Part shown: piece after piece, positions 4,317 to 31,500 of the stretch
Position numbering within the stretch: the first letter of the stretch is position 1
Layout of the letters: the number at the start of each line of letters is the position of its first letter
DNA from: Chara braunii
Lineage: Eukaryota; Plantae; Charophyceae
Direction: 5' to 3'
Assembly: GCA_003427395.1 (NCBI GenBank)
Contig: BFEA01000013.1
Coordinates: 1,867,827-1,931,826, forward strand
DNA length: 64,000 nucleotides
The notes under the pieces: model-generated
Database searches by the model: none
What the model saw: the letters and a program-made list of their open reading frames with translations, nothing else
What the model was told of the DNA's origin: nothing
Made by a program: the position numbers and the translations under genes

Positions 4317-4367
4317 TCGAAGAGTGAGAGAGGGAGGGAGTGTACTTCGATCGATGCGTCTCGCAGC

Positions 4368-4606: not shown

Positions 4607-4642
<36 letters not shown>

Positions 4643-4925
4643 TGGGAGAGAGAGAAAGGGGGACAGTTCTTTGATCGTATCATTGAGCAAAAAGGATCAA
4701 ATCTCCCGCTGAAACATCGAGAGATTCACTACTCTACATGTGTGTGTGTGTGTGTAAGAGATATGAGAGAGAGAGGGAGAAAGAGGTCAAGGAGAGCGGG
4801 GGAGAGCAAGTACTTCGATCGATTCATTAGGGAAAGGCTGCAACTGGCCTCGCGCAACCTCCATCTAAAGGCTAGCAAAATCGATCGGATCTTCTACTAC
4901 CACGTCGGAATATTCACTACTGCAC
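4368..4925. repeat. Tandem ~90-130-bp units CCATCGAAAAGATGAGCAAAGTCGATC...GTCGAAATATTCACTAC separated by (TG)n
   Basis: About 5 copies; the reverse complement is related to 245-305 and 55000-55430. Confidence 0.8.
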
Positions 4926-4976
4926 GTGTGTGTGGGCATGTGAAATAAGAGAAGGAGAGAGAGCGAGAGAGAGGTA

Positions 4977-5359
4977 TGGGTACACGTGGCATCTGTGTGG
5001 GGATCGAGGTTCTGAGTGGTATGCGAAGCATACTTGGAGCATGAGGCGAACGGCATTGGCCGATATCTGCTCGTACTTTAGGGAAGCTGTTGTTGTCGTC
5101 GTCCACATTGTAGTAGTAGGCTAGGTACGATCCGTCGTCTGTAATCTGGGCACTTAGCGCTAGATAAGAAATCGACGTTGGTTCTGTGTTGATGACGATG
5201 GGACTATTCCAAAGTTGTCAATTTTGAGTTTTTGATGTGTTCTTATTGGGTGGGGCTCGTGATGCAACACTGCTATTGGCCCGAGATCACGACTACCTGA
5301 TCACATGTGTAAGATGCTGAAGGTTCGCTATCGATCATCCTTCTTTACATTAATTGTTA

Positions 5360-5397
<38 letters not shown>

Positions 5398-5784
5398 GTG
5401 ATTATTAGATGCACACCGGGTTGGCTACAAGTGGCATAAGTGATGGGGAAAACGTACCTGGTGAAAAAGACATGCGACATTTGGCCGCTATCCACTCGTA
5501 TTTCTGGAAGTTGTTGACGTCACCAGCGGAATTGCAGTATAGGCTAGATAGGATCTGCCATCTGTAGACTGAGCACCGGGCTCAGGTAGCTTGAGGACAT
5601 TGATTCTGTGTTTATGATGGTGAGACTATGCCAGCTTGTCAAATCTGAGCTTTTGCTGTGTTCCTACTTGGTGGGACCGTGATGCAATTCTGTTTTTTGT
5701 TCGAGGTCACGACTATGTGGTTACACGAGTGTGATGCTGTAGATTTTCGAAGTTCGCTATTGCTAATCTTTTTATTATTATTAT

Positions 5785-5826
<42 letters not shown>

Positions 5827-8186
5827 GTGTACAGTAGTTTCTTGGGTGCGAGTGGCATCTGTGTGGTGAGGATCGAGGGTGTGACTGAAGCGAGAGACAT
5901 ACCTGGTGTTGGAAGCGGGTGACATTGGCAGCGATCTGCTCCTACTTCAGGAAAGTTGTTGTCGTCGTTGAGACTGTAAGATAGATAGGATATGCCATCT
6001 GTAGACTGAGCACCGGGCTCAGATAGGATGGCGACATTGCTTTTGTGTTGATGATAATGAGCCTATACCAGCATTATCAATTCTGAGCATTGCTGTGTTC
6101 TTATTTGGTGGGGTAGTGACTATCGGGTCACTTGTGTATGATGCTGTTGATGTATGAAGTACGCTGTCGTTCATCCTCCTCGCCAGATAAGATGGCGACA
6201 TTGCTTCTGTGTTCATGATGATGAGCTTATACCAGCACTCCCAATTCTGAGCATTGTTGTGCTCTTATTTGGTAGGGTAGGAGATATGGTTAACAGATGC
6301 ATATATTTTCAGGCCTCCTTTCCAGGCAGTTCAACCACTTTAGGTTAGTACATCACTTTCAGATTATGTGTGGATCTAAACATGGGGTTGTCTGGAACCC
6401 CCTTCAGGAAGTTCAGCCACTTCAGGTTGATACACCACTTTCAGATTGCCTACAGATCCATTGCAAATGCTGGGATGGGGATACCTAAAACCCCTTTCAG
6501 AAGCTTCAGGCACTTCAGTGGTTTCATGTCCCCACCTGAAATTCCGGAAATGATCTGACATGATTGAAGCTTTTGAAATGGCTTTCAGGTACCCCCATCC
6601 AACCATTTGGATAAGGGTACCTGAAACCCCTTTCAGAAGCTTCAGCCACTTCAGCGGTTTCAGGTCCCCACCTGAAATTCATGAAATGACCTGAAGCGGT
6701 TGAAACTTCTGAAAGGTGTTTCAGGTACCCCCATCCAAATGGTTGGATGGGGGTACCTGAAACCCCTTTTAGAAGCTTCAGCTACTTCAGCGGTTCCAGG
6801 TCCCACCTGAAATTCCTGAAATGACTTGAAGTGGCTGAAGCTTCTGAAAGGGGTTTCAGGTACCCCCATCCAACCATTCGGATGGGGGTACCTGAAAGTC
6901 CTTTCAGAAGCTTCAACCACATCAGCGGTTTCAGGTCCCCACCTGAAATTCCTGAAATGACCTGAAGTGGTTGAAGCTTCTGAAAGGGGTTTCAGGTACA
7001 GTACCTTAAATCCCATTCAGAAGCTTCAGCCACTTCAGTGGTTTCAGGTCCCCACCTGAAATTTCTGAAATGACCTGAAGTGGCTGAAAAAACAGGCAGA
7101 AAAAAAAACAAAAAAAACATAAAATTTGTCCTGCAAACCACCCGAAACTTCTGAAATGACATGAAGTGTCTTCAAGCCATTTCAGCGGTTTCAGACCACT
7201 TCATAATCTTTGATTTTGAAATTTCAGGTGGTCGTTAACCTCGAGTGTAGGGTAGTGATGTAATTCTGCTTTTGATCCGAGGTTAATTGATCACGTGTGT
7301 AAGGTGCAGTTGGTTTCTGAAGATCACTGTTTTCTCGTTTTCCTACCTCAGATAGGATCTGCCGACAGCAGTCAAGGCACGGAGAACCAGATAGGAAACA
7401 GACATTGGATCTCTGTCGATGATGCTGAGATCATTCTGACGTTGTCACTTATGAACCTTTGTTGTGCTCTTATTGGTGGAATTCGTGCTGCAATACTAGT
7501 CATAGTTCGAGGTCAAGATTATCTGGTCTCATGTGTATGATGCTACTTGGTTTCTGATATTCGCAGCCACTCATTTCTTTGCAGATATAGTAGTATTGTT
7601 ATTATTATTATTATTATGACTATTATTGCTATTGTTGCCAGACTCGCTTTCTTTATCGCTTCACATGCATGTGGACAGGGGGACACGCCACGCTAGCGGT
7701 CAACACCCAAATGCAGAGCTTAGAGATATGGCAGCAAAGAACGCAGTTCGATTGCAGACTCGCTTCGAATGACTATGGCACGTCAGACCCACACGCGGAG
7801 AGAAAGAGAAAGGGTGATGATGACATGATGTGAGGGCACATGCCTGGTATTGGCAATGATTGGCATTGGTTGACATCTTCAAGTACTTCGTTGGCTGCTG
7901 ATCTCAACAGTAGCAGTGTCAATCATTAAGGGGGTAGTAGTTGTGTAGGGAATAGTTTGGGCGTCGAGTGTCAGATAGGAGGTTCGACATTTGATTCTTC
8001 ATTAATCATGATGAGGCTTGACCAGCATTGTCACTTATGAGCATTGTTGCGCCTCACTTGGTGGAAACTCGGGTTGCAGTACTGCTTTTGTTCAAAGTCA
8101 TGACTATCTGATCTCTCGTGTGTAATGCTGATTAGTTTTGAGGTTCGCTGCCAATTAGTGTCTTGCAAAATGTGATGTATCGTTGC

Positions 8187-8240
<54 letters not shown>
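4977..8240. repeat. Degenerate ~400-450-bp tandem units separated by (ATT)n
   Basis: Recurring GTGGCATCTGTG...ATACCTGG...GTATAGGCTAGATAGGAT...TGATGATG...GTGATGCAA blocks at about 4985, 5440, 5850, 6000, 7340 and 7830; homologous to 56283-61250. Confidence 0.75.
6281..7246. mobile_element. Non-autonomous DNA transposon-like insertion filled with a palindromic CTGAA/TTCAG satellite
   Basis: GTAGGGTAG is duplicated at 6272-6280 and 7247-7255, with inverted GGTTAAC/GTTAACC near the ends. It interrupts a host repeat unit. Confidence 0.7.
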
Positions 8241-8260
<20 letters not shown>

Positions 8261-9848
8261 GCAATCAGATTCCCCTTCCTTCTCACTCTATCTTCATATA
8301 AGCAGAATAGCACCCCAAACCGAGTGTTGTCTCCCGGTCTACATTCTGTTTGAGGCTGCCTCAACTTCACAAGGCCCTGAGTGCTCACCGTCCCACGTGG
8401 AACTTGCTGACTGAACTAAGTGAGACTGGGACTGGGTACCGCCGACTCACCATGGATGGACCTAGCCGCCTGCCCACTTGCCTCTAGTTTGTTTAAAGAA
8501 CCACTTTTGAACTTTCTGCGATCTGGGGACTTGGCCATTCGATACTGCAGCGCTACAACCTTGATCTTTCGGAGTTGCAGCGGATACGACCCAGGCCTCT
8601 TAAGAGAAATCCGACAGACTGACACAGACGAGAGACAAACAGACACAGACAAGAGACAAACAGACACGGACAAGAGGTAGTCAGACAGAAAGAGTGCAGG
8701 CCATCAGACAAAAAAAACAGACACAGATAAGGCTGATACACGAGACAGACAGGGACAAATGGGCGGACGATAATACGGACAACGAGGGACAGATAAACCA
8801 GACGGAAGCAGGGGAGCACATGTAGTCAAAACAAACAAGTAAAGGCCGACAAACCAGTCACGTTGACACATTGATATACACTGATATACAGTGGAAATAT
8901 ACATAGTCATTGTGACACACGTGCACACGCTGCACCTTGACCACTGTTGCACAAAGTCGTTGTAGCAGCGCTTCCACATGGCTTAAGCAGGAATGAATGG
9001 ATGGCTTGGCGCTGCATCTTGATCCAGAAACTTTTGTTTGATATTGGCTTGCATTCCCATCGGCCCTAGGTGCCCACTGTCCCTTACGGTACTTGCGCGA
9101 GTGAACCTGGTTAAATTGGGACTGTACCGCTGACTGCAAGTGGATGTACCACTGACACAGCATAGTTGCCCTGCAAACCTAGCAGGGAGAGCTTTTGCAC
9201 CTTCCATCAAATATAGGCGGACAATCTGAGGAAAACAAAACAGACAAATAGTCTGAGACAGACAGACAGACATACAAAGGTGACACAGACACACATTGAC
9301 ACTCATGCGCACGGTCGGGCACGGTGACATACAAGTGCATATTCACCTGCAAAGTCACACACACGCTGTGAGATACAATGACACTATGACAACCACACAG
9401 GCACGGGGACATATAGTGCGCGGTTACTTACAAGGTCACACACAGACTGTGATTCACGGTGCCTCAAAGAGAGGAAGACACGTATACGGTAAGGGAGACG
9501 AAGAGAGAGAGAGGAGGGAGATAAGCACCGGGTGTACGTGAAGGGTCGGCGAATGTGTTGACATCAGGAACACTAGGATCAAAATGAACCTGTTGCGTGA
9601 GCACAACTGTAGGTAGGATAGTGGAGTAAAGTACGGCGGGGCATTGGGCGCCGGACAGAGAAAGTGACAATGGATACTGAATTGGTGTAGGCCTGAGAGC
9701 TTGAGCATTGGCTCATTAGTTCATAATATTGCTCTGTTTGGCTGGATTCTCAGTACTATGGTGCTCGCTGCTTGTATACGACTACTCATACATCTGTGTG
9801 ATCTCACAACTTGGTTTTGAAAATCATTCGCACTCATATTCCTTGCTA

Positions 9849-9849
<1 letters not shown>

Positions 9850-9912
<63 letters not shown>

Positions 9913-9939
9913 CACTATTATTATTATTATTATTATTAC

Positions 9940-9976
<37 letters not shown>
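9850..9976. repeat. (ATT)n microsatellite
   Basis: Direct reading; similar tracts at 8187-8256, 59820-59873 and 62787-62870. Confidence 0.95.
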
Positions 9977-10236
9977 TGACGGCACATGCTAGGATGGGAG
10001 TCAGCGGTGGGAAGGGTGCGAGGTAGTAGAAAGGGGAGGATCGTCGTCCAGCGTGATGGCTTCAACTTCCTTCATCCTCCTCCGTCTTTCCTATGTCTAA
10101 TCCCCTCGCACACCAATCATTTTCAAGCAGTACATGTGAAAATGATGTTGCCAAATGGCTTGCTGAAATCAAATCTCAAACACGAGAGACTCCTATTCCG
10201 TACTTGGTCAGTTTAGACGTCTCCAAGTGACAGGGC

Positions 10237-10298
10237 GATTGCGGAAGCTCTGCCGGAGTTCAGGAGGAACTCTGGAGGGAGGGAACAGCAAGGTGCGC
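10237..10298 (+). promoter_or_regulatory. Conserved hairpin plus 5' splice donor (copy C)
   Basis: CCGGAGTTC-AGGAG-GAACTCTGG followed by AAG|GTGCG; five homologues in the window. Confidence 0.6.
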
Positions 10299-10459: not shown

Positions 10460-11669
10460 ATGATTTGAGTAAGCGAGGCTCCGAGAAGCCTGCCTTATCA
10501 CCACAATGATAGTAACATGGTGATAAGAGTAGCGAGGCTCCGAGAAGCCTGCCTTATCACCGCGATGATAAGAATCAATGTGGTAAGAGGAGCGAGGCTC
10601 CGAGAAGCCTGCCTTACCATTGGAATAACAAAAGATCAATGTGGTAAGATGAGCGAGGCTCCGAGAAGCCTGCCTTACCACTGCAATAACTAAGATAAAT
10701 ATGGTAAGAGGAGCGAGGCTTCGAGAAGCCTGCCTTACCACTGTAATAATAAATACTACTATAATAACTAAGATCAATGTGGTAAGAGGAGCGAGGCTCC
10801 GAGCAGCCTGCCTTACCACTGTAATAACTAAGAAACAACGTGGTAAGAGGAGCGAGGCTCCGAGAAGCCTGCCTTACCACTGCAATAACAAAAGATCATT
10901 GTGGTAAGAGGAGCAAGGCTCCGAGAAGTCTGCCTTACCACTGCAATAACTAAGATCAATGTGTTAAAAGAAGCGTGGCTCCGAGAAGCCTGTCTTACCA
11001 CTGTAATAATAAATACTACTGTAATAACTAAGATCAATGTGGTAAGAGGAGCGAGGCTCCGAGAAACCTGCCTTACCACTGTAATAATAAATACTACTGT
11101 AATAACTAAGATCAATGTGATAAGAGGAGCGAGACTCGGAGAAACCTGCCTTACCACTGTAATAATAAATACTACTATAATAACTAAGATCAATGTGATA
11201 AGAGGAGCGAGACTCGGAGAAGCCTGCCTTACCACTGTAATAATAAATACTGCTGTAATAACTAAGATCAATGCGGTAAGAGGAGTGAGGCTCCGAGAAG
11301 CCTGCCTTACCACCATAATAACAACGATCAATGTGGTCAGAGGAGCAAGGCTCCGAGAAGTCTGTCTTACCACTGAAATAACTAAGATCAATGTGGTAAG
11401 AGGAGTGAGGCTCCGATAAGTCTGCCTTACCACTGCAACAACAAAAGAAGCAAGTGTGATAAGAGTAAGCGAGACTTCAAGAAGCCTGCCTTATCACCAC
11501 AACGATAAGAACAAGGTGATAAGAGTAAGCGAGGCTTCGACAAGCCTGCCTTATCACCACAATGATAAGAAACAGGTGATAAGAGTAAGAGAGGCTCCAA
11601 GAAACCTGCCTTATCACCACAACGATAAGAAACAATGTGATAAGAGGAGCGTGGCTCCGAGAAGCCCGT
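10460..11669. repeat. Array I: ~19 tandem 60/78-bp stem-loop units
   Basis: Consensus GTGGTAAG-AGGAGCG-AGGCT-CCGAGA-AGCCT-GC-CTTACCAC, with the variant GTGATAAG/CTTATCAC. Confidence 0.9.
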
Positions 11670-12145
11670 TGTCGAGCGCATCGGTCCCACACGGGGACCC
11701 TCCCGGCTGCGTCACACAGGATTATGCAGGACTTGTCGCGGAGAGCGTTTGCCGCTCCGGCCGAGTGCGCCAGCCGTACCTCTCGCGAGCCCCTACGACA
11801 GGACAAGGTCACGCGAGGCACCGCTACCTCCACCTGCGGGAGCTGTTACCATCCCTTAGGTGGGCGTATCCCTGCCGAGCTACTGAACCACATGCGAAAG
11901 CTTTTCGTATGCAATTGCAGAGGTGGCCCAGCCGAGGGCGTTTCTCGGTCGCTGTAGCATAGGGGGTACGCGAGGTCGAACGCCCGAAAATCGAACCCGT
12001 ACGCGAATCGTCGTACTGGGGGGCTGAAGTCCCAACGCAACTCGACGTCGGTCGACTAGGACGCACTACATACCCATGCCTTACACCACAATACGCACGC
12101 TTACTCACCCATAACACTTGAAACCCCACGCGAAACAAACACCAC
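11670..12145. repeat. Left inverted terminal repeat (X-type terminus)
   Basis: Reverse complement of about 22130-22601; homologues at 43498-43990, 23930-24251 and 30400-30610. Confidence 0.9.
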
Positions 12146-12435
12146 GAACTACCCCACAACCTTTGTGTTTGAATGAGATTGTGCTATCCCCGTTCTGTTG
12201 AGGTGATAATCCAAGTAGACATTCGGGTAAACCCCCACAGGGCTAATCCCGACGGTGTCCTTTCTGATAACACTAAAAGTATTTGTATCCTTTCCTTGTT
12301 AGGGTTTATTTTGGTGGAACGATGAAGTTCCGAGCGGAAGGGTTAGCGTGTCGCTGGTGTTGCGCCAGACAACTCATCACCGCTCCAAATTCCTTCCCGC
12401 CCTAGGAGTCGTCTTACCCCGCACCCTTTGGGGCA
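12146..12435 (+). repeat. Internal direct repeat, copy 1
   Basis: GAACTACCCC...CGGAAGGGTTAGCGTGT...GTCTTACCCCGCACCCTTTGGGGCA, repeated at 21620-21904. Confidence 0.9.
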
Positions 12436-12906
12436 CCTCAGGGTGCAGAAGACGGAAAGACCATCAGGCCGGTTTTGCGCTCTCTAAAGGGTTACCTCCC
12501 CTTAGCGCGCGCTTCAGCCAACGCCTTAGCGTCGGAAGTAACCCCATGGTTCCGAAATGGCCATTTAGGTATGGGCACCACATAATTGTCGGGGATCTCG
12601 GCTGCCTACCGGGGTCCTTAAGAGAACGAACCCAGGTTAAGTGTCGGCTGATGATCTAGGCAAAACGACAAAGGTTATAGGTTGGATTGGCTTATATAAG
12701 AGGGATGTATATGAAGTCATAATAAGACTGAGCGATATATAGTGCGACTAAAGGTTGTATCTTGGGCGTGAATGACTAATGGTAGAGCGGTTAGCTAAAC
12801 CTAGAAGTAGAGAATGATGTAGGGCAAACCCTCTGGAACTTGACGAACTGCTTACCGATCTGTCCCCTATTACTCCTGTCAGGTTGGTTAGCAAAAAGGG
12901 GTAAAG

Positions 12907-14710
12907 ATGCCAGACAACGATGGAATCGAGCGGGGCCCGGACGCTACGCCGGAGGACTTCGTCAAGGCACTCGAGAAAAGGGAGTTGGCACGGCTACAAG
13001 TGTCAAAGATTGACATCTTCCACTTCGAAGGGGAGAGGGTGTCAAAATGGTTGGAGCTCCTGGAGCAGATTACGGTCGAGGTGCCAGAAGCGGATAAATT
13101 CAAGTACCTACCTCGATACATCTAGTGGGAAATCCGGCCTGAGATAATGAAAGTAGCTGCCGGAGCAAGGGGAGACTGGGCGAAGTTCAAGGCGGAGATG
13201 CAAAGGCGATTCAAGTTAGGGGATGGTTTGCTGACAAAGACGGACTTGGAAATGCTACAACGTGATGAGTTCTCCACGGTAGGAGCCTTCGCCACGGCGT
13301 TTGAGAAAACGGCCAAGAAAGTCCCAGGGTTGGCAGAAGAGGAACAGTGTGCCACTTTCCTGGGCACTTCAAGAACTGGGAGACCTCGTCGCTAACTAAG
13401 AAGGCTGCGCCAGGAAAAAAGCTCACTTGGGCTGCCATAAAGGAAGGCGTAATGGACGGAGAACTGGACCAGGTAGACATCTTCCATATGAGACAGACTA
13501 GGAAGAAAAGGAAGGCCTTAGACGCTACGACGAGTGATGGGCGCGACTTCAAGAAAATGGTGGAGGATGCGGTGGCCCAACTCGATGCAGCGAAGGAGGC
13601 AAGGAGAAAAACTATGGCGGCATCGCAGACCCAAGGTAAAGCAAAGAAAGCGATGGTGCAGGAGGAAGAAGAAGAGGAAGAGGAAGAGGAAGAGGAAGAG
13701 GAGCCGCAGAAGTTGACAAAGGCTCAAAGGAAAGCAAGGAATTTGGCTCAAGGGGGGCAAGGCTCGGGGAGGGGCCAGATCCCACAAGCTGTAGCCATGC
13801 CGCCCCCTGAGTCGCCTAGTCAGTCCGCACCAGTACACTATGGGTCGTGGCCAGGGTGCGGACCCCCGAGTCATTGGCATGGGCACTGTTCATACGCCCC
13901 GTGGCCGATGAGCGGGCCGCATGGGTCGTGTGCCGGACCCTCAGTGAGTGCGGCTTCCTGTGGCTGCCCGGGACCCCAAGTGCAGCAAGTGAGCCGCCCG
14001 AACCCACCGCCAAAACAACCCCAACAGTCAGCCCCACAAGGTTCACAAGGCAATCAAGGGGGTGGACGTGGACAGAACCAAGGATGGGGCCGAGGGCGGG
14101 GGAATGGTGGCCGAGGAGAAAACGGTAGAGGGAATGGTGGTGGTAACGCTTCAGGTGGCGGAAACGAGGGCTGGACGGCATCCGGGAGTCAAGGCGGTCA
14201 AGAGTGTGGAAGAGGTGCTGGCAGAGGGAGGATAGACTGGAGAAATGCCATTTGTTGGCACTGTGGGCAGAAAGGTCATACTATTAAGTTCTGCCACGTG
14301 AGGAGGAACGACGAGGACGAAGGTTTAATTAGCACCAACTATGATGGAGACGTGTACGACAAGTGGGGGTACCACCTTGACCCGAAGATTCCGGGCGGTA
14401 CGAGGAAGGAAGCCCTGCGAAGGGCTGAGGCCGGTGAGCCACCCGCACCTCCAGCCATGTTTCGGATATGGCAGGAGAAAGAGGTCCGTAGTGACGTCAG
14501 GGTGGAGGAGGCAGGAGAGAACGAAGAGGTGGAGCAAGAAAGGAAGGTCGGCACTACTAAGGCATAACCGATCATGGTAGAGTCGGACGATGAGATTGAA
14601 GAGGATTACTGGAACAGGCCGTTGCATGCCGAGACAGGGGAAGACTATTGGAGAACGGTCCGACAGACAATGGAGAGAATGGAGGACCTGATAGACAAAG
14701 TCGGGAGAAG
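12907..14710 (+). pseudogene. gag: Retrotransposon Gag pseudogene (Ty3/Gypsy-like) with CCHC zinc knuckle, truncated before pol
   Basis: ORFs 12907-13125, 13147-~13365, 13347-14567 and 14574+ join across two stops and one frameshift. Capsid-like N-terminus (FHFEGERVSKWLE...W..FK.EM.RRF), RG-rich tract, and CWHCGQKGHTIKFC at 14253-14294. Confidence 0.85.
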
Positions 14711-15880
14711 CCCGACACCGGTTGCTTGTTGGGGTGATGGAAAACTGCCGCTGCCGCTCGTTCCCTTGGCCGAGTTAAGCACTGGGCGCTGTGCAGAGAA
14801 AGGCAGCGAGGGTGAGAGAGAAGGGGTAGGAGGAGTTAGAGGAGAAGGATACAGTACAGGTAAACATAGACGGACCAGAAGCAAGGAAAGAAGGTGACGA
14901 CAACAGAAGGGGAGTCAAGAGACTTACCTGGCGCAGTAGTCGGCAGTGTCCCAACGGAGATCCGCTTTCACGTTGTACCGTTGGAGACTGGAATACGGTG
15001 GCCCGTACTCGTCGTGGCGACCCCAATCTAGTACCATCCGGGGAGAGCTTTCGGCGGGATGGTAGTTACCGCCCCACTGGTGGTCCTACCTCTTCTCATA
15101 CTCGACAGCGCTGGCCTTGCCCTCGAAGATCATACGAACCTGGCCTGGAGACCGGCTAGGTGCACTGGGGAGAAAGACGAAGGTGGCAAAGGAAGGCTGT
15201 ACCTGAACAAGGCGTAGTACCGGGTGCATGCAGCGACAGGGATGGAAGGAGTAAGGGGAGGAAAAGCTATGGGGGGAGTGGCTGGTCATACCACGCTTAA
15301 TCCATGACGGATTTGAGAAGGGAAGGAAGCAGGGGATAGTCTTTTTGTAAGGCGAATTCAGCTCTGCAGTCAGATTGAGCAAAGGGTTAGAGGAATAGAA
15401 AGAAAAAAAAAAAAAAAAAAAAAAACCAGGCGTGGGTGAGTCGAGAAAGAAGAACAACAAAAAAGAGAGGAGTGAAAACTGTGTAACTTGGTCATTTCTC
15501 AGCGGATTCGGGCAAGAAAGGATGCTAAACTGGGGTTTCGGGCCACTGCGAGCACCATGGCGGTGTCAGAATTAGTAGTAAGGGGTTAGTTTTAGTGATA
15601 CAAGTGTTAACAGCTGCGCGGAAGGTAGAACTCCATGACTGTCGACAAAAGGTAATGTACCTTTCCACTTTTTGGCGGGAGATTCATTCACCTTTTCTTT
15701 CACTCATCTTCCGTAAGTGCCGCAGGGGAAACACAACGACTGTTTGCCTTGGAAGTACGCCCGGCTTTTATTTCGGTTTCCACCACGTTCGTAGTCTGTA
15801 TGCTAACGCTTTAGTTTTCTCTCTAATTTTGACTGAATCGGGCCATAATAAACGTAAGGTCCATCCATGGAGTAGGCGCG

Positions 15881-15938
<58 letters not shown>

Positions 15939-15951
15939 CACCTACCTCGGA

Positions 15952-16066
15952 GAATGGGCGACACGGGATGAACCGCAAGTCGAGCTACGGTGCCAAGCTG
16001 CGGGCGGACCAACTCCAAGTGGGTCATTTTTGGTAGGCAGAACAGACGACGCGGGGTAAACCGAAC
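15952..16066 (+). pseudogene. Two short rearranged 28S/25S rRNA-derived fragments
   Basis: CTCCAAGTGGGTCATTTTTGGTAGGCAGAAC and GGCGACACGGGATGAACCGCAAGTCGAGCTACGGTGCCAAGCTGCG match the conserved LSU segment CCATTTTTGGTAAGCAGAACTGGCGATGCGGGATGAACC. Confidence 0.75.
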
Positions 16067-18924
16067 GAAGAGCAGCAACCTCAGGACTGCAGGGGACGTA
16101 TCTTTCCACTTGCTAGTGGAAGGTTCATTCTCATTTTGTGCAGTTGGTGAGTGCGCTGCTGTGCAGTTGGTGAGTGGCAGCGCACGACCCATAGTTGTTA
16201 TCGGTTCGTCGTCATTAGATCCTGCTGTGGCGATCGTACTCATCATAGCCTTAGTTGGTAAAGCTTGCCCTCCCCGAGCCTTAAGCCATCCGTTTTGCGA
16301 TGGTATACGGCTGTATACGATCGTATACGATTGTGTGTTTCCTCTATTTTTATTCTTTTTCGTGTGTGTGTTCAGCAATTTACGAAATTCTCTTTCAATT
16401 TACGAAATTCTCTTTCTGTTTTTTCTTTTCTCTCCTGCTAGCATTTCCAGCAAGTCAGGGTAGACCCTCCTAGTGATGCCCCTAAGAAGGCCACAATCTC
16501 TCATTAGCACTGCATGCTCGGATTAAAGCCTAATGGCACTGAAAGATGACGTCCAGAGATTACATTGGAGACGACACTTGGAGTGCTCCGTGTGCCATCA
16601 ATAGAGGAGTGCTGCTGGGATAGACTTTGTGCTCTGAGTGCGAGAGAGTGTGACTCCTTGGACAGCAAAGGGTGGGTGNTATTGGAGAGGCTGATTTATC
16701 CACGCCGAGGCGAAGCTGGAAGAAACAGAGGGGATGTCTTCATGAGCAATCATTGAACGAGGGTTGTGGTCCTGAGGTGGCAGTATCTTGGCTTGGGGTT
16801 TAGCATGTGCCGTAACCACGTTCCTTTCGACAGGCTGGTTTATTGACTTCCAGCCTCTGGATGCTTGCTCGTCTGATGCTCGTTGCTCCTCCTGCGTGCT
16901 GGCCTGCCTGCTTGTCGAACCCTTCTTGACTCATGGGCTTGATGTCTCGGGTGGACTGTTCTGCGCGATCTTGATGGACTGTGCCCGGACAATAAGGTTA
17001 GCCCTGGAGGCGCAATTCGCCCTTGACGGTATTGCTGGTCTTTGCAGCCTGCAGGGGCGAGATTATTGCTGTACNATAGGCAATANCTGTTGTCTTGGCT
17101 TGTTGGTAGGCTCGAGAGGGGCGGGGCCGCTGAGTCAGTAGTTGAACGTCAGGCTAGTAAAGTATAGACCGAGCTGATCTCAGAATTGGTGAAAAGTCGA
17201 GCAACCACAACTAGAACGAAGACCGCCACCTCAACCTGGGAAGTTCCTACTCCCTTATCAGGCGGCTGCCTATGTAGCTGCACTATTATTAGACTACTGC
17301 TGAACTGCTGCAGTTGTCATGGCTGCTACGACCCCGGGTGAGCGACGCGGGTAGCGGTTGAACTGTGCATCGTTGGGCTACCTGATCGAAAGGCTGCGCT
17401 GAGGGAGAAGGTAGAGGAAGCAGCCTGGCAAAGTTGTGTAGTTTCAACTGTGCTGAGTTCGTGCGGGGGACTGTGCCGAGCGATAGCATGCAGATTTAGT
17501 GTGACTTGTATCATTGCACTGTCGACGAGGTACCGGCGCTGATCATAGCACTGTTGTTCCTTGAGGTACTAGGTTATCAGGCTGGTACTGCCGTGGTTCT
17601 GGTTGTGNGGCGTTGCCGGTTTCTGCNGGTCGGTGCCTTTTGCTGGGTCTCGCCGTACTCGCGGCATCATTTACTAAGCATCNCTGGGGGTTACTGTTAT
17701 GCTAGCCTACTGCAAAGACTGTTGCTGTTCTCGAGTGGGCTGATGCTACGACCGGGGTTTGCTCAAGAAGAGGTCACTACTACGTCTTGAGGGCCTGACG
17801 GGGGACTGTTATTTTTCAGGACTTGGTACGGTTGCAGGGCGCTCGGGGTTTTGAGTTTCGACAGCAACTGCGGTGGGGAGGATTGCTGCTGGGCAGCACA
17901 GTGCCCTTTGCTGGGTACTGCTGCTGGGCAGCATGGTGCCCTTCGCTGTGTATTGCTGCTGGGCAGCACGGTGCCTTTCGCTGTGTACCACTACTGCGTG
18001 TGTCAGGGGCTGCTGGTATGGTGGCGGTATAGCGGCTATCTTCTGGGAGGCTACAGCTACGGACTGTGCATTGGTGGGGCCCTCGCCGGGCTACTACCGC
18101 AGTATACCATAGATGCTCTCCGTCACGGCGGAGCTGCTGTTGCTATTTGGGGGGGGGGTCTATCCAAAACGCAGCCCTTCCCAGGCTGTGTGGCTACGGT
18201 TCGGACAGTGGATGCTGTTGTTGGCCAAGGTCTGGACTGGTTGCTGTGGTTACCGGCTACTAGCTACTGCATATTGTGGGCTGTGCACAGGCCACCGCTA
18301 CGAATTGCTGCGAGCTGCGGCTGGCTACAGTTGCTGCTGTTGCTGGCAAAAAACTGTTGCTGCGGGGGCTGTGTCGCTCCTGTTTCTTTGGGAGCAGCAG
18401 CGACAGGTTGCGGACAACTGAGACTCGCTGAGCTGCTGCAGCCAGCCAGATGGGGCAGTGACAGCTACCACCGCTGCTACAGAACCAGGTTGCCACAGTG
18501 CACGGACTGTGGGTTGCTGTGCGCTTGGGGACTGATGCGGGGCCACTTCGTGGCACACCTGGTACTTGTCGTACGTTCGCTGATGTGGGTGGCTGGCTGT
18601 GCATTAGCTACATGGAGAAGTGAACAGGCCGACATAAAGGTGTTGCAATGACTTAGTGGACGTCAGGGGGGTTGAGTTCAGCGGGAGGCTTCAGAAGTTG
18701 AACAGGCTGTTACATTGGTCGTCATTGCGGAGCCCTCAGGCGCATCAAGACAACGAGGCCCTCTCCAGTGAGCTAAGCGCACCTCTCTTGGATCCTGAGA
18801 GTCTGAACCTTTCTCCATCTATCCTTCTTACTCTCAGTCTGGTCGTTGGTTACGAGAGGAAGGCGGCAAACGGGATTGCAACCCGTAGGTCCACGCCAAG
18901 GCCTCTGTGGGAGGTTGCCCCACC

Positions 18925-18985
18925 GATTGCGGGAGCTCTGCCGGAGCCCAGGCGGGGTTCTGGAGGCAGGGAACTTCAGGTATAA
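18925..18985 (+). promoter_or_regulatory. Conserved hairpin plus 5' splice donor (copy A)
   Basis: CCGGAGCCC-AGGCG-GGGTTCTGG followed by CAG|GTATA; a pyrimidine tract and CAG acceptor lie at about 18805-18837. Confidence 0.6.
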
Positions 18986-19214
18986 TCTCGCTAACCTGTG
19001 TGATCCCTTCCCCTATCTCCTATCCCCTAGGTATCTGAATGTGTATATGGGAGGTTATTACTTTTTGTTTTGTTATGTATGTCAGGACATGCATTGTGGA
19101 AAGCTAAATGAACAAGTATATATGAGTGTTCATATAAGCTTGAGTGAAGTCAGAAAGAATGAATTGGGGGAAGGTGGGAGGAAGGTGTATCGCTTGCTGT
19201 GACCAGGTCAACCC

Positions 19215-20490
19215 AAGGCTGGGCCCCTCTAAGTTGGTGTGGGCTCAGTGCTGTGTTTTATTCATGTTTGCTGGGCTGCTTGTATGGTTTGGAGGGTTGG
19301 GCCTATCCTAAGTTGGACGGACCAGTCGCTGTTTTTTTGGGGTTTCTGAACAGGAGGATGGGCACCCTAAGTTGGGAGGTCCCAAAATCCTGGTGGTTTT
19401 TTTGTGGGTTGCTGAAAATAGAGTTGGGAACACTCTAAGCTGCGTGGACTCAGTTCTGTGTGTGTTTTTTTCTGAGGGGGACACAGGCATGAGGCTGAGC
19501 ATACCCTTAAGTTAGGGCGGCTCAGTCATAAGCCATGAACACAAAGGTCAACCAAAGTATACAACTTTGATACATACTATACGAACCTATATCATCTGAC
19601 AGACCGGGCACCCTAAGTTGGGAAAGCCAGTCAGTAAGTCAGGTAGAACAATAAGAAGAAAGAAGTGATAAAGAATACAATGATGGTAACCAGGGAAGAC
19701 TGAGCGTACCCTTCAGTTAGGGCGGCTCGGTCCTATGCTCGTAATAAGACAAAGGATCAGCAAGTTAGTATAAACTTGTTTTATTTTCCCTTCTAAACAC
19801 GAGGCAGGGTTGGATGTCTCCCTAAGTTGGGTAGGTTTGATCATCTGCCTAATAAGAGAGAAACACATAAAGTTTGTGCATGTATCAATGGTGGTTTTCA
19901 TATGATTGTCGTTACGGAGGCTAAGCGTACCCTTAAGTTAGGGCGGCTTGGTCATACGTCGTTGTGCCTTGTTCAGGCAGATTCTGTCTTATATAACTAT
20001 ACTGTTTAAGTCAGCTAGGCGTACCCTGAAGTTAGGGCGGTATGGTGATAGGCTCTTGTCGTTGGTGTGATGTAGGTTGGACATACCCTTAAGTTAGGGC
20101 GGTCTGACCATTCGTCGTTCGTGCTTGTTGTGTAGGTTGAACGTACCCTTAAGTTAGGGCGGTCTGACCATTCGTCGTTCGTGCTTGTTCTAGGCAGGCT
20201 AGGCATACCCCTAAGTTGGGGCAGCCTAGTCCTATGCCCTATGTAGCCAGGTCTATGAGCTGGTTAGGCATACCCTTAAGTTAGGGCAGTCTAGCTTTAT
20301 GCTTCATGTCGTCAGTTCAAGCAGAAGCCAGGCGTACCCTTAAGTTAGGGCGGTCTGATCATATGCTTTATGACTAGAGTTTATCTGGAGTTGGGCATAC
20401 CCTTAAGTTAGGGCAGTCCAGTTGTGCGTACCTTTACTTGTTTACTTAGGCAGGTTGGACATACCCTTAAGTTAGGGCCTTGTCTGATCC
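19215..20490 (+). repeat. Array II: ~17 stem-loops with core RTACCCT-TAAGTT-AGGGCR and variable spacers
   Basis: Period about 60-110 bp; each core is enclosed by its own complementary 7-9-bp arms. Confidence 0.9.
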
Positions 20491-20869
20491 TATGCCATAA
20501 GTGAGGGAGTTATTGAAAGGGAACAACTTAGTGATCTAACGAACTACCTGGGCAAATGTATGTGGGATTGTGAGAGATGCATGCTCATGTATGATTGTAG
20601 GGTTTCACTTGGGGTATCTTTTCGATAGGTTAGTTGCTTTAGATGCTCGCCAAGTGCAGGAGCCATAGGTAGGTCAGATAGATGTTGGGAGGGAAAACTT
20701 CGGATGAGGATAGGACTGACCCTGCTAGGGGTTAGGCCCAATGCTAGCCCCCGGTCTCATCTAGAGGTCGTGTTGGTTGTCATTGAGTCTGGATCATCAC
20801 GCAGATGTCGGAAGTTAGTCCCAAGTATAGTTGCTTTGTTTCGTTGCTTTTTCAACTTTGTATAAATCT

Positions 20870-21000
20870 TGGCAGCCTCCTGTTCCTACAGGAAGTGCTG
20901 CCGAAATTTCTAGCAATCTGAGGGAGTTGGTCATTTTTTTACTCATAGAAATTCTGAAAAGGCACTTTTTCTATGGGAAGAGCTGCCGAAATTTCGTAGA
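20870..21000 (+). repeat. Array IV, two units (GGCA...TTYC-TAYR-GGAAG.GCTGCCGAAATTT)
   Basis: Reverse complement of the units at 31815-32430 and 45230-45850. Confidence 0.7.
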
Positions 21001-21619
21001 ATTTTGGGAGTTAGAATGTTTTTCAGTTGGGAGTTACTTAGCAGACCTATCCTGATTAGAGGAGATGCTTAGTGACCTGGTACTCGTAGAGGAGCTAGGA
21101 CGCGACTAGGGGGATGTTCTCCCCTTGGCACAAGCATGAGTAGTACTCTTCTTTCGCCTGTACTGTGATGCAGGTTTCCGAGTTATCATTTGAAGGCTTG
21201 ATCTGATCAAGTTATTTCGTCAAAAGGATTACTCTTCTGTTATCGCTGATAACAGGTCGGTTGCCGACTCGTCGGTCTGCGACTCAACCCCAACTCACCC
21301 TCAACACCCATCCCTAAAAGGCTTTAGCCCTGGTGATTTTGTTTGTTTTGTTAAGGCTTCACCCAGACTTTTATTGAATGGTCATTTAACAGAAGTACAG
21401 AGTACTTAATTATCGTTGGTTGGCTGGAGGTAAGGGCTTGTGTGGCTAAAGCGAGGGGTGTGAGTGGAGAGGCTGGTTGGAGTTGACCCCGTGTAGCATG
21501 TGGATCTTTGTTTGATATCGTGGTGTGATTGCAGGTATGTAAGGAAGAGTCTCGATTGATTCATGTTGAGTGGTATTGCGTGGATTCAGATGGGCAGACG
21601 ACACAACTGTTGTGAGAGT

Positions 21620-21904
21620 GAACTACCCCATAACCCACTTGTTTGAGTGAGACGGTTTTGTTCGCGTTTCAATAGGGTGGTAATAAATGTGCGTTCGGGT
21701 AACCCCTATAGGGTTAATCCCGACGATGTATTTCTTGATGATGCTAAGGGTAGTTGTTTTATCCTCGTTGGAGTTTATTTTGGTGGGACGATAGAGCTCC
21801 GGGCGGAAGGGTTAGCGTGTTGCCGGTGGTGCGCCAGACAACTCACCACCACTCCAATTCCCTTCCTGCCCTGGGGGCCGTCTTACCCCGCACCCTTTGG
21901 GGCA
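21620..21904 (+). repeat. Internal direct repeat, copy 2
   Basis: Matches 12146-12435. Confidence 0.9.
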
Positions 21905-22129
21905 ACCCTCGAAGTTAGCAAGGGCCACAAGGCTACGAGTACACCAGAGTACCCCACCAGCGCGAATGCTTGCGAATGCCCGCATGGCTGGTTGTCATGA
22001 GGAGGTCATGCGCTCGCTCGACTCTTATACGGAAACCCAGCGCGCGACGCCTATCTGCTTCTGTTGCGTAAAAGTATGGGTCGGATACTGAAGGGACTAG
22101 GAGTGGTGTCGTGGCGTTGTTTGTGGCGG

Positions 22130-22601
22130 TCGTTCTGTGTGTGTTTCTGTATGTTATGAGTGGGTAAGTATGAGTATCGTGGTGTAGCGCGTGGTGAGAG
22201 TAGTGCGTCCTAGTCGACCGACGCCGAGTCACATTTGGAATTTCAGCCCCCCAGTACGGCGAGGCGCGTGCGGGTTCGATCTTCGGGCGTTCGACCGCGA
22301 GTAACCCTCTATGCTACAGCGAACGAGAAACGCCCTCGGCTAGGCCACCTCTGCAATTGCATACGAAAAGTTTTCGCATGTGGTTCAGTAGCTCAGCAGG
22401 GATACGCCCACCTAAGGGATGGTGACAGCTCCCACAGGTGGAGGTGGCGGTGCCTCACGTGACTTTGTCATGTCGTAGGGGCTCGCGAGAGGTACGGCTA
22501 GCGCACTCGGCCGGAGCGGCAAACGCTCTCCGCGACAAGTCCAGCATAATCCTGAGTGACGCGGCCGGGAGGGTCCCCGTGTGGGACCGATGCGCTCGAC
22601 A
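22130..22601. repeat. Right inverted terminal repeat (X-type terminus)
   Basis: Reverse complement of 11670-12145. Confidence 0.9.
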
Positions 22602-25600
22602 CCGCCTTATTATCATCTGACCTTGTTCTAATGCAGGACAGTGAATAGGAGCAGTAAGACCCTCGAGGTCTGCCCTATTAGAAGTAGACGATGGGAAGAT
22701 CCCGAGCGGTCTACCATATAACTACTAACCTTCTCAATAAAATTGGATCAATCAATTACTAACAGACTGTTTCTGATTCTATTGAGGAGAGGATAGTGAG
22801 ATTTTGACCCTGAGAGACTTATCACTCTATCTTGAAACTTCTCATTTGTTTTCTATCATGTGATTTTTCTCCAAGATGAATTAATGACATTGCTTGTGCT
22901 CGCTAGGGAAAGAAACAAGAAAAAGGGTTATAATAAATAATCTTAAAAGGAAACTTATGAAGGATCACTAGGTCGGAAGAGATAGGAATTAACTTTGTTC
23001 ATTACCCAAACCCATAAGCCAACATCCTGGCATTTAGGTAAGGATTGAGGATAGACAGTGGGTCACAGGTGAGCATCGATCTTTACGTCACAAATCTAGA
23101 AGGAATCTTTTAAACCTTAGCATAGGAAAGAGGATGTTAAGTTTCTTTCGGACTGTGCTGTGTCTACAGGTTTCATCACACTTGGAGAAGATTACGGAAG
23201 AAAACCGTAAGGAACTGCAATTCTGTTATCATTGGATAAAGGTCGGTATAATTCCGACTCAACCTCCACATGGCTTGATACCCACACCTAAGACAAAACC
23301 TAAAAAGGGAAACGGATAGATCTTCCCTTGTACCTTAGCCTAAATTGTCCAAATCATCTCTCGAAGGTCTTTGAAAAGATGAAGGGCTGGGTAATAGGAG
23401 TCAGGAGTAGGAAGGAGTGTTGTTTTCAAGGTTTTGGGGAGTGAGGGACTTGCTGTGAATGGGTTAAAGGTTGACGCTTGTAGCGCATTCTGTGTTTTGT
23501 ATTTGTATGCATGTATGTGTTTTCTTGCATCTGCACAAGTGTTGGGCAGTGAACTGTCTTTTCTGGACTTAAGGTCACCTGGGATATTCGGACACAGGGC
23601 ACCGCAATTTTGAAAGTGAGGTCCACCGCTCATTTGCTCCCCTGATAAACATATGTACTTATATATGTCTATCAACAAGTTCATACTCTGGTCTGAGCTT
23701 AGGAAGGTTATTGTTTGGGATTCTGTTGAGATCTTGAGAGGGTGAGAGATTACAAAAGAATTTAAAATTTGACATTTTCTCGTTTGGTCAATGAAGGAAC
23801 ATAGATTCGCTATCATATTTAGCTAAGCGTGGAAGACTGTTCGGAAAAGTCGACCTGATAAGAATAGTCGGTCCGAGGGAGTTAGTACCTCGAGGCACAA
23901 TATACGGGTCAGTCTTAAGGTGTTTTACCGCGTGTATGCCTATGCTACGACGATCGAGAAAAACGTCATCGGCTGGCTTACCTCTGCGATTGCATGTAAA
24001 AGTCTTTGCACGTGGGCCGGTAGCTCAGCAAGGATACGCCTGCCTAAGAGATGGTGACAGCTTCCGCAGGTGGAGGTAAGTTGTACCTCGCGGGATCTCT
24101 AACCTGTCGTAGGGATTCGCGAGAGGTACAGCACGCGCGCACGGTCGGAGTGGTGTTTTCCATAGGTGACAAAAGACTCATGTGTGATACGAGTGTGAGG
24201 TCCGACACAAGAATTACTTTGCGTCTGGGTGTGGGACCGCCACGTGCGACAGCGGTATGTGTGACGGGAGCCTGCAATAGTTAATTTTAGCTTATGCGTG
24301 TGAGTCATGAACAAGGAGGACACTAATCTTCTTTGTATCATTCCAATTATAACAAATGTCCCAAATGACTTTGTAGTAGTTATTCAATAGGTTGTAATAT
24401 AGTAGTTATTTGCATAGCAAGATTGACTATAGCGTCCGTAGCTACATGAGTTAGCATAGCAAAGACTATAATCTCAACAACAACTATCGTAACAGTTGTT
24501 TGTTGCAACAACTTCATTGATCTGCACAAGTTTATAATAACAATCAGTTATAGTACTCTGCAGACAATAGGCAATAGCAACAATAGTCTGCTGCAATAAA
24601 TTTTAGGTTTACCTTACGATAGTTATTATTAGTGTTTCATAAAGATCACACAATTTTAAGTAATTGTGTGTAACACTGGTCACTATAATCTATAGCAATA
24701 ACTTATGCCAACTATTACCGTAGAGGTTATCAAAGATAAGCTTCTTCAATAATTGATTCGCAAGTTAACGACCTCGAAAAACGTGTTGTAGAATCAAGTG
24801 ACTTGTTAATGTGTGTATGCTTATTACTGAGTTTTCTATTGGTTGCTAACTACAGGAACGCTTGAAAAAGTTGAAATCTATGAAAAAGCAAGATTATGTA
24901 AACTTGCACCATTATACTTTCCTTACCTGATCAAGAGGTCGAATCCCGATTTAATATTTGATGTACTTTCACTGCTAACAGGTAACTCTTAGCAGGAATG
25001 AATTTCAAAAATAAATAAAATCGATTGAAATTAGTGACACAATAAAGCATATTATTATGAAAACTCGATGTAAACAAACCTTGAAGATCAAGTTTTCGAA
25101 GATATGATCCTATAAGGTCTCCATGAGAGTATATCAATACCGAAATTTATCAACCTTGCCCCCTCTTTTCTTCTTCTTGTTTATTTTTTACCATCCTTCG
25201 ACATCTTGCTTTATTATATTGTCTTTTGTTTATTTGTCTTCTCTCTTCTTCCTCGTTATTTTCACCCCATTGCTTCCTCTATATTATGTCAGATTACCGT
25301 TGGGTCCATGCAGACCATCAACATTGTATTTAACTACGTTCATGATTGTATTTGTTCAAAAAAAAACAAATAAATAAGAAGAATGAAATTAACAGATATT
25401 ATCATCAATAAACAATTTAACTACACGAAACGGTTAGTGACCCACACAAAATGTTGTCAATAGCGGGGAGGACGGTCATAATGGTGGCAACAAAATCCTG
25501 AGCAACTTCGACTTTGTCACGCTCAAGCATAATTCACTTCCTTAGTTGCAACAGATATCCATGTGTCTCAATCTCTTTATTCACTTCAATACTCAAAATC

Positions 25601-28503: not shown

Positions 28504-31500
28504 CCTGTGGTTGCTTCCTTCTTAGTTCCTTGGCTCGATCCTTCCACCGACTGCACTTGATCACGTTCGCGGCAGAACGGGTCTGGGAGATGAGGACTAT
28601 GATTTCTCTCTTCTTCCTCGTCTGGTTGTCGTCGTCCAATCACATTATTTTCAATTCCTCATCATCATCTTCTTCTTCCCCTTCCTCCTTCATAGGGTCT
28701 TTTTTCATGTGTCACGTTCCTTTTCTTCTCATGTGTCCGCGTTTGTCTCTCATTTCATGTTCGTGCGTCTGTGCACGTCTGCGAGTCTTTTATCTTAACC
28801 TCCTAGTGCCATATCCCCTTCTCTTACTTTGTGTGCACTTTTATTTCCTTATCCCTTGCTTTGTGTGCGTGCTTTCCCCGTTTGCTAAGCTCTTCCTCTT
28901 TACTCCGTAGCTCAACTCCTCCATCACACATTCACTCATGGCCTACGCTCATGTGTTCATTTTCCTCTTCGTCGCTCGCTTGTCTCCATCTCCACCTCAT
29001 TCCCCCCCCCCCGTTCTCCTTCACACATTCATCTCCTACGTTGCACTAGTCTCATTTCTCCTACTACCCATATTCTGTCATCTACGTGTTACCACATACT
29101 TCATTCATGACACCTCGCCCTTGTTTTTCCTAAGGTCATTCAACCAAGGTCCATAACGTAGGATCGGCATAGCAGGATGGAGGACTCCACCAGTAAACAA
29201 ACCTAGCCAATAAGGCGGCCAAGATCCTTATAGCAAGTTCGAATAGTAACTTCGATTGAAAATCTCACCCTATTAGTTCTATATAGGGCATGTATCCAAA
29301 ACTCGCCCTTCTCTGCTTCTCGAGATCTTAATCGAGAAGGTGAATCAACCCTTAAATTTATTGCAGATTCAATGAAATAGTTTTTGAATCGGCACCAGAT
29401 TCAATAAAATAAAATTATTAATACGACAATGTCATAAAACATGAAGAAGAAGGGGGAAAAAAAATAAAATCTAACACAACTACTCTTGTTAAGTTATTGT
29501 GGTCATATTTCCAAGCAGAATCTTTGAATCTAATCGTGCAATAACTAACTACCTATGCCGAAAACGAAATAACTCGTTGTTTAGATTTGTTGCATAGAAG
29601 AGAAATACCATAACCTACTAGTCTAGCTCCTTTTACGAATAAAAACCTTCATTAGGATTAGTTAGTACTGCCTATTGTCAAACTGACAGGGTGGATTCTT
29701 ATCCGAACCTCGTCACTGCCTAAAAGTGGAATTAATTCACACCATAAAAAATTTACCCAAACTGAACAATCATTTTTATTTATTACCTCAGTTGTATCTA
29801 AATCATATTTTAATTTCATACCTGGACTTTCCACGGACTAAAAGTATTGATCCTTAGACTCATGCGTGTATCGTTGGCTGGTTTTGCTCGACCGATCCCG
29901 CAACCATCGTAGTCGAGGGTTTTTAACCAATTTCTTATTCTTATCACACGTCACGATGAAGACTCGATTGATCGGACGATCAATCCTTTACATTGTCCTG
30001 ACCATACGGTCGGTAGTTATAGTAATTTTAACTAGTACCGTTATGCTCCACACACGTCGACATTCTAATTTTCAATATCACATGTGTGCACGACGGACCC
30101 GAGTTGTTCATTTTGACTAAGCGTTTGACTTTTGCAGTTGGAGGGTTCTTTTCACTAATTTCAACCATCTTAGCATGCGTCACAACATCTCACTCGTATA
30201 CTTACCTATTTTGTTTTACTTATACATATCGTCCGCAATGGTCGAGGCACGATACACGAAATAGGCAGGCAAAAACCTGATTTTTACCTATGGTGAACTT
30301 TGTTACTCGGACCCAACAGAGCTGAAAAACAAAGAAACATAAAACTTAGCCAGAAAAAAGAAAAAATGTTAAAGAAATATTAGAAACCATGAGGTTGCGG
30401 CTTTACGAACCTAAGCATTCGTTGTCTTTCATTTTCGTAGGTCGTGTATCGATCCCGCAGAGGTAGTTCAGTCGAGGGCGTTTCTCGTACGATGTAGCGT
30501 ACGGGGTTCTCGAGGTCGAACGTCTTAATCAGACCCATATGAAAATCAAGGCTCTGGGGGTTTATCTCCCAAGCACGACTATGGGCCGATCGACTAGAAC
30601 GATTCATCTAACCACGCGGTACACTTCACAAAAATAAAATCAGACTCCGGATGTAAATCTTTCCTAGTCCTTTTTTCATATCTGACCCATAACCTTTTGA
30701 CTGTAGAAACCGACGTGTATCGCATGTGAGGTTCCTAATAAATGTCTAGGCATTGTCATATCGAGTAGCTATGCATGAATGCGCAGACAGTCGCAGGGAT
30801 GGAATACTATGTGCTACCTATAACCGTGTGATCCTCAATGATTTCGAGGATCAGTGTTGGTTGACACGCGTTTTGAGAGGTCAGTTTCTTGACGCTAGAC
30901 AATCACGTGTGCACTTGCAAGACATACCCTCTTCTGCACCCTGCGCGAGTGAGCGCTAGGCGGGCTTCGACCCTTTGTGGAAACGGGACGCCTCAGACCC
31001 TGAAAGCAGAGCTCCATCTTTGGAGGCTTAGAAACAGGTCAAAGCGTTTGATTTTGATAGTTGTCATGAACCTTAACGTCCAACTGTATAAAAAAAATAA
31101 AAAGTAGAAATAAAAAGGATTTTCATTTTTCTCTCGATTCAAGTGTGCTCAATTTTTACACACGGTCGACTTAGATCGTGCGGATACACAAAGATATAAA
31201 TATAAAGGGGTTATAGAACACAAGGCCATCACTCTCTCAATCATCAGTGTGACTCCCTTCAAAATATACGCATGATCACAGACAAAGTCAAAATCCGGAC
31301 TTCAACTCATAAAACATATCTACAATCACACCAAAGATTCAACATCGGCAGACCATGCACTACACGGGGTCAACTTTAACCACTGTCTGCGCTCACACCC
31401 CTTGACTTATTCACACAAAACTCAACCTTTATCCAACCTTCCAAAATAAAACATTCAGTCCGTTTTAAATGGTCATTTAATAAAAGTTCAGGTAAGACCC

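Follow-up and report, generated by a model that had tools for sequence, protein, structure and literature searches.

The 64,000-nucleotide stretch of the Chara braunii genome analysed here (contig BFEA01000013.1, positions 1,867,827 to 1,931,826 of the forward strand; at its full length, the window) contains a gag-bearing unit that extends from position 11670 (its start reading TGTCGAGC...) to position 22601 (its end reading ...GCTCGACA), with inverted repeats at its termini and direct repeats nested inside them. This unit is probably, though far from certainly, a defective, internally deleted and rearranged copy of a long terminal repeat (LTR) retrotransposon, an aberrant cDNA with a U5 end at each terminus that was inserted by integrase. 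The anatomy of the unit, the canonical layout of its family, the mosaic composition of its left-hand pieces and the phase of the target array on its two sides can be read directly from comparison with related loci. The unit and its immediate surroundings are made up as follows.

10460-11669: array I, host sequence to the left of the insertion, in 60/78-nt units
11666-11669: left copy of the target duplication, CCGT
11670-12160, minus strand: X-prime, the inverted last ~490 nt of the LTR (U5 side), which forms the left arm of the inverted terminal repeat (ITR); its first base lies exactly at the LTR terminus
12146-12160: junction J1, a 15-nt overlap that matches the beginning of D at 15/15 and the inner end of inverted X at 11/15, an exact 7-mer included
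12146-12586, plus strand: D, a forward 441-nt piece of LTR interior, comprising the left direct repeat (DR) and 150 nt more
12586/12587: junction J2, at which D is joined to the last 11 nt of the primer-binding site (PBS)
12587-12597, plus strand: the PBS remnant (positions 10-20 of a 20-nt PBS)
12598-12906, plus strand: leader, from the PBS to gag
12907-14609, plus strand: gag, with a capsid-like domain and a CCHC knuckle
14697-14707: junction J3, 11 nt of microhomology between the 3' part of gag and LTR interior
14709-22601, plus strand: 3' LTR without its first part
17884-17988, plus strand: 35-nt repeats in the 3' LTR
19494-20500, plus strand: ~60-nt arrays in the 3' LTR
21620-21904, plus strand: right DR, in the 3' LTR
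21905-22107, plus strand: segment g, in the 3' LTR
22108-22601, plus strand: X in the 3' LTR, the right ITR arm
22602-22605: right copy of the target duplication, CCGC
22606-22700: continuation of array I, in phase, in degenerate units

The first-pass annotation, which was made from the DNA letters without database searches, had described much of this correctly. The inverted repeat is of 494 nt (11667-12160 against 22604-22108; 87.7% identity over 497 nt, and 95% in the outer 301 nt) and the direct repeat nested within it is of ~290 nt (12146-12435 against 21620-21904; 77.6%). The termini at 11670 and 22601 are indeed TGT...ACA, with outer flanks CCGT at 11666-11669 and CCGC at 22602-22605. 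The proposed gag is real (Pfam Retrotrans_gag, E=4e-4, plus the CCHC knuckle), though broken twice, by an in-frame stop codon (13123-13125) and by a shift of frame near 13356-13365. Read across its two frames, it matches a 560-amino-acid Chara braunii protein from end to end at 87-90% identity; its longest open reading frame (ORF), at 13347-14567, shares 85-87% identity with proteins of this species, the source of 28 of its 28 matches. No PBS had been evident before gag, which is explained by the break at J2 that leaves only 11 nt of it (12587-12597). The join near 14710 that had looked like a deletion or recombination has its true breakpoint at 14708, and what has been removed there, at J3, is pol, the polypurine tract (PPT) and the start (U3) of the 3' LTR. 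Having no PBS, no pol and no 5' LTR, the window copy is unable to transpose again.

The normal layout of the family emerges from 12 fetched loci with a related gag (L001-L012), all from assembly GCA_003427395.1, which together with the window provide 13 5' ends. Ten of the 12 (L001-L007, L009, L011 and L012) share a canonical order: LTR interior, D, g, forward X, GG, PBS, leader and gag. Their LTR interior matches window 18708-21619, the ~60-nt arrays included. Forward X in these loci ends in GCTCGACA and is followed by GG and then by the PBS, TGGCGCCGTTGCCGGGGATC, which lies 2 nt past the LTR end and is complete in 11 fetched loci (the ten canonical ones and L010). Downstream of gag, relatives encode an aspartic protease, reverse transcriptase (RT), RNase H and integrase (Integrase_H2C2 + rve), in that order, and these pol-bearing relatives are 84-87% identical to the window in gag. 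The first-pass annotation had proposed looking for relatives that encode RT and RNase H together with either a DDE integrase or a tyrosine recombinase; the search found a DDE integrase and no match to a recombinase.

The length of the LTRs is indicated by direct repeats in two loci: that of L003 is at least 9 kb and that of L007 pairs 1-1156 and 3001-7469 with 16029-17162 and 19070-23527, from which the LTRs are at least 8.5 kb and the internal part at most 6.4 kb long. The start of the LTR was not found in any locus, the LTRs outrunning the fetched flanks or reaching gaps. One candidate start, at 18708 (TGTTACATTGG), is ruled out by the direct repeats of L003 and L007, which extend kilobases further upstream; 14709-18707 is thus also LTR. 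As judged from its layout and its proteins, the family is a Ty3/gypsy-type LTR retrotransposon with giant LTRs, and, aligned with it, three features of the window copy turn out to be LTR sequence: the non-coding arrays of the first-pass annotation, the right-hand DR and the right-hand ITR arm. The suggestion of an unusual retroelement whose DR serves as an R region is not supported: 10 of the 13 5' ends are of the ordinary Ty3/gypsy type, the DR is LTR interior, and its left and right instances are not copies of each other.

The argument for insertion by integrase rests on the two termini and the target. GG, the U5-PBS spacer of normal copies, is absent at both ends of the window copy, and each end is an exact U5 end. 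When the flank to the right of the element is compared with array I's 60-nt unit, the best fit is at phase 29 of 60, exactly as expected of a 4-bp duplication (11/16 matches, null 1.3e-4; 8/12, null 3.5e-3, when only bases outside the duplication are compared), which bears out the earlier statement that removing the unit restores array I. The simplest reading of two U5 termini without GG in an array that is in phase is a single integrase insertion of linear DNA with a U5 end on each side. A copy of array I with an empty site was found neither in the window nor in the fetched loci. Termini of the TG...CA type and a target duplication of 4-6 bp, both expected of Ty3/gypsy elements, are present in the window copy; of the pair of direct LTRs flanking an internal region it has the 3' LTR only.

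Eight U5 ends that lack a following PBS were compared (window 11670, 22601 and 43498; L007 24553; L008 8726, 13524 and 17934; L010 8240). Seven have an AC flank and six an ACG flank, which suggests that the family's integrase strongly prefers a 4-bp target with CG at its centre. The window contains other partial LTRs of the family at 43498-47259 and 30457-34449 (both minus strand) and 23913-24153 (plus strand), that at 43498 having an exact U5 end and an ACGC flank. The piece at 23913-24153, taken with a 51-nt LTR-like piece at 10236-10286, suggests that the element is nested in an older related LTR, to which array I and the sequence around it would belong.

The pieces that make up the left end were not drawn from the LTR on the right. 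X-prime aligns in reverse to the PBS-preceding LTR end of all ten canonical loci. In their outer 290 nt the left and right X arms are 95.1% identical, but either arm is also 92-94% identical to nearly all other family members (L003 and L006, at only ~84-88%, excepted). An outer tip that is 92-95% alike in most copies means that the identity of the two arms says little about their relationship. The inner 200 nt are more telling: left and right are 78.8% identical there, while the right arm is 91.5% identical to L006 and the left arm 83% to L001 and L002. D points the same way. Its segment 12436-12586 (150 nt) is absent from the right LTR, whose D290|g junction is shared with L006, so that the left D represents a different structural variant; and with only ~5% divergence in the tip, the 22% divergence in D is not explicable by decay after insertion. 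The identity pattern and the structural variant together rule out that the left end is the element's own decayed 5' LTR. A normal LTR that begins with inverted X is also ruled out, since the stretch of L003 from the PBS at 9043 to the 3' repeat at 22102 is free of inverted X. By these alignments, the left pieces derive from other family members and the unit is a mosaic.

The final ~290 nt of the LTR (22300-22601 in the window, and in all copies) are 92-95% conserved in most copies and the adjoining inner ~200 nt about 80%, which suggests that the conserved tip is a functional U5/R region. The RNA fold of the X tip is no better than that of shuffled sequences (z = -0.5). Tribute must also be paid to a false lead: tRNA-like words in X raised the thought of a tRNA-derived short interspersed element inserted twice, which was rejected, X being the LTR end that adjoins the PBS. 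ARAGORN finds no tRNA-like head in X, and its best Rfam tRNA match is noise (E=0.91; 19 bits, where the gathering score is 47).

Microhomology of 7-15 nt marks the joins at J1 and J3. The last bases of LTR segment D resemble a degenerate PBS (TGCGCCGT compared with TGGCGCCGT; L001 9010-9022, with equivalents in L003 and L004, and window 12579-12586), and the D fragment of the window ends exactly where a tRNA primed at this pseudo-PBS would start DNA synthesis. The pseudo-PBS was possibly involved in forming J2.

The rearrangement most likely happened during reverse transcription, by steps that can be reconstructed as follows. Template switches guided by microhomology would have taken place between two different co-packaged RNAs and their cDNAs. 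In the last of these switches the nascent strand would have copied a minus-strand DNA as far as its 5' end, the U5 terminus that removal of the tRNA primer fixes. Every minus-strand DNA begins at the U5 terminus, so that a switch onto one of them, run to its end, yields an inverted tip. The product would be a linear cDNA with a U5 attachment site at both ends and no U3 end; with the PPT and the start of U3 lost at J3, a second U5 end would have been the only way for the molecule to become insertable. Integrase would then have trimmed GG off both ends, made a 4-bp staggered cut and inserted the cDNA into the array of the older related LTR. In a close variant of this scheme, two cDNAs would each contribute one U5 end and host end-joining would close the middle.

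Two precedents from HIV-1 bear on this scheme. In vitro, HIV-1 integrase prefers U5/U5 pairs in concerted integration and keeps the correct duplication (PMC8742673); as proposed here, two U5 ends are used with a normal staggered cut and duplication, but that is a test-tube reaction with model donors, while the window case is deduced from a genomic insertion. Inverted proviruses and proviruses with asymmetric LTRs have been explained by template switching between two packaged RNAs (PMC9278108). Those defective proviruses, with their asymmetric LTRs and internal inversions, are likewise products of faulty reverse transcription integrated with proper host junctions; they keep the left U3 end, however, whereas the window copy, an algal retrotransposon, has a second U5 end.

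Inverted X lies upstream of the leader in three of the 13 sampled 5' ends (the window, L008 and L010) and is absent there from the other ten. Each of the three cases has private junctions and a different inverted length. In L010 a flank that does not belong to the family is followed by inverted X (355 nt), a 12-17-nt overlap and the last ~1.1 kb of a forward LTR, and then by an intact PBS, gag, protease, RT and integrase (with a spliced gene model of 1278 amino acids at 14758-19136). By its order of parts, L010 appears to repeat the plan of the window copy independently, with other junctions. In L008 (7112-9643), LTR arrays stand flush with inverted X, which is followed by inverted g and D and then by the PBS, the inverted block meeting the PBS at most 3 nt from the PBS breakpoint of the window. 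The PBS may be a hot spot for aberrant joins. The outer X end of L008 at 13524 was considered as the duplication partner of its inverted X and rejected (ACGC against ACTT). It is conceivable, although we consider it doubtful, that insertion by way of two U5 ends is a recurrent side pathway in this giant-LTR family: after failed synthesis of the 8-9-kb 5' LTR, or loss of the PPT/U3 end, a switch onto minus-strand DNA would add a second U5 end, and integrase would still insert such a molecule.

Several considerations weigh against an origin in reverse transcription followed by integration. The proposed route requires four template switches, which is a lot, and J2 has at most 1 nt of microhomology. 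Junctions with microhomology also arise after insertion, by illegitimate recombination that is common in genomes dense in transposable elements, and the window is packed with fragments of the same family. ACG flanks being near-universal at the family's U5 ends, the 3/4 match of the NCGN flanks (CCGT/CCGC) is weak by itself, and the case for a target duplication depends on the phase of the array. The L010 element is seen from its left side only, its right end lying beyond the fetched flank. The inner limits of inverted X, at 494 nt in the window and 355 nt in L010, mark no single fixed RNA 5' end. Finally, the structure of the locus is that of the assembled sequence, in which the R/U5 boundary is putative.

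Decay after insertion is a rival reading, but an unlikely one. Family members nested within or adjacent to one another in opposite orientations would have been fused later by microhomology-mediated deletions, that is, by illegitimate recombination, bringing together the tip of an LTR in inverted orientation, a piece of LTR in forward orientation and an element with gag. Nested family fragments abound in the window and the fetched loci, J1 and J3 have the requisite microhomology, and L008 and L010 can be read in the same way. Moreover, the preference of U5 ends for ACG places a short CGT+TGT repeat at many element edges that could mediate a flush deletion. What is hard to reconcile with decay is that the inverted tip stands flush with the duplicated target bases and that the array is back in phase on the far side; a normal element would show the start of U3 at that position. 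Nor can the left D be the 5' counterpart of the LTR on the right. Decay would therefore call for three or more elements and four or more deletions, two of the deletions ending exactly at element termini.

An artefact of assembly, in the form of a chimeric or collapsed consensus of near-identical repeat copies, is quite improbable. The published Chara braunii assembly is rich in gaps, with runs of N in most of the fetched loci, and six isolated N positions at 16679-17683, within the 3' LTR of the window copy, hint at ambiguous consensus calls in the repeat. L005 contains a 3.4-kb inverted duplication around a gag copy (4902-8343 against 15095-11654, 99% identity), of which the outer end at 15095 abuts an N gap and the other outer end is about 600 nt from a gap; this may be a true palindrome or an artefact of scaffolding. 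In the window copy, however, both edges and all three junctions (J1, J2 and J3) are free of gaps. The overlaps at its junctions are of just 1-15 nt and imperfect, unlike joins through long shared repeats, and an artefact would not provide flanks that restore the 60-nt array in phase.

That the unit represents a distinct propagating class, with long terminal inverted repeats, an internal DR acting as R and a gag, and either DIRS- or Ginger-like or mobilised by integrase on two identical ends, is very improbable: TGT...ACA ends, a 4-bp duplication, long inverted ends and, in 3 of 13 copies, an inverted X ahead of the leader would fit it, but these three cases are not copies of each other, the family has no tyrosine recombinase or transposase and its relatives have RT and a DDE integrase, the window copy lacks a PBS, pol and a promoter-bearing 5' LTR, different subfamilies contributed its arms and DRs, and no annotated protein shares the 103-amino-acid ORF that spans J2 (although that search, without matches, is uninformative in itself, such ORFs being rarely annotated). 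The mixture of DIRS, Ginger and LTR traits that the first-pass annotation remarked on is there to be seen; the likeness to DIRS and Ginger comes down to one LTR tip that is present twice, in opposite orientation. Its other suggestion, a chimera mobilised through two identical integrase ends, fares better, in that both termini are U5 ends without GG in an in-phase array, but as a one-off defective cDNA and not as ongoing mobility.

The comparison with known elements leads to the same place. DIRS and some Penelope arrangements have inverted terminal repeats, and Ginger has TGT-starting inverted ends and 4-bp duplications, as in the window copy; normal copies of the family differ from all three in having a tRNA PBS, direct LTRs and a DDE integrase with RT. 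DIRS is contradicted by the DDE integrase of the relatives, the lack of a tyrosine recombinase match and the target duplication; Ginger by the family's RT and PBS and the absence of the inverted tip from 10 of the 13 5' ends; and a Penelope-like element by a pol of retroviral type and the absence of a ribozyme at Rfam thresholds. Neither a hammerhead ribozyme nor a GIY-YIG nuclease was found. With Ty3/gypsy elements (Metaviridae) the shared features are the gag CCHC knuckle, the protease, RT, RNase H and integrase carried by relatives, TG...CA ends and a short target duplication; the window copy differs in that 5' LTR, pol and PPT are missing and a U5 tip in inverted orientation is present. 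LINE-1 copies that are 5'-inverted by twin priming offer a parallel, with a 5' part inverted relative to the 3' part, one target duplication and microhomology at the inversion junction, but these copies have neither LTRs nor integrase and are made directly on the chromosome by target-primed reverse transcription.

The first 13 nt of the family PBS, TGGCGCCGTTGCC, are the same as the tRNA-Asp/Asn PBS reported for plant ATHILA elements (10.64898/2026.03.20.713144). L010 also has an extra gene after integrase, a 717-amino-acid ORF at 16983-19136 without a Pfam match, which could be an additional, perhaps env-like, gene of the family. On the PBS and the extra ORF, membership of the ATHILA lineage is at most tentative, and the family's LTRs, at 8.5 kb or more, are far outside the ATHILA range (1-2 kb by default).

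The window has some further features. Fragments of eukaryotic large-subunit rRNA (Rfam RF02543) are found at 39571-39729 (minus strand, 52 bits) and 41129-41534 (plus strand, 94 bits), on opposite strands and far from a complete rDNA unit. There are two microsatellites, (TAT)43 at 9847-9976 and (AG)27 at 15883-15936, and a gap of 71 N at 4168-4238.

On this evidence the unit is a rearranged, dead copy of an element type already known and not a new mobile class, and a candidate for such a class is thereby removed. There is a warning here for annotation: programs that look for LTR pairs will miss or misclassify copies of this sort. The interest that remains is mechanistic, in an apparent fossil of faulty reverse transcription that integrase nonetheless accepted, with an identical U5 end on each side. 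This arrangement seems to have arisen more than once in the family, whose LTRs are unusually long, and a census could measure how often reverse transcription fails and what substrates integrase tolerates in nature. If the two-U5 pathway is truly recurrent, it would be evidence from nature, in vivo, both for U5/U5 integration and for a route by which aborted cDNAs are rescued.

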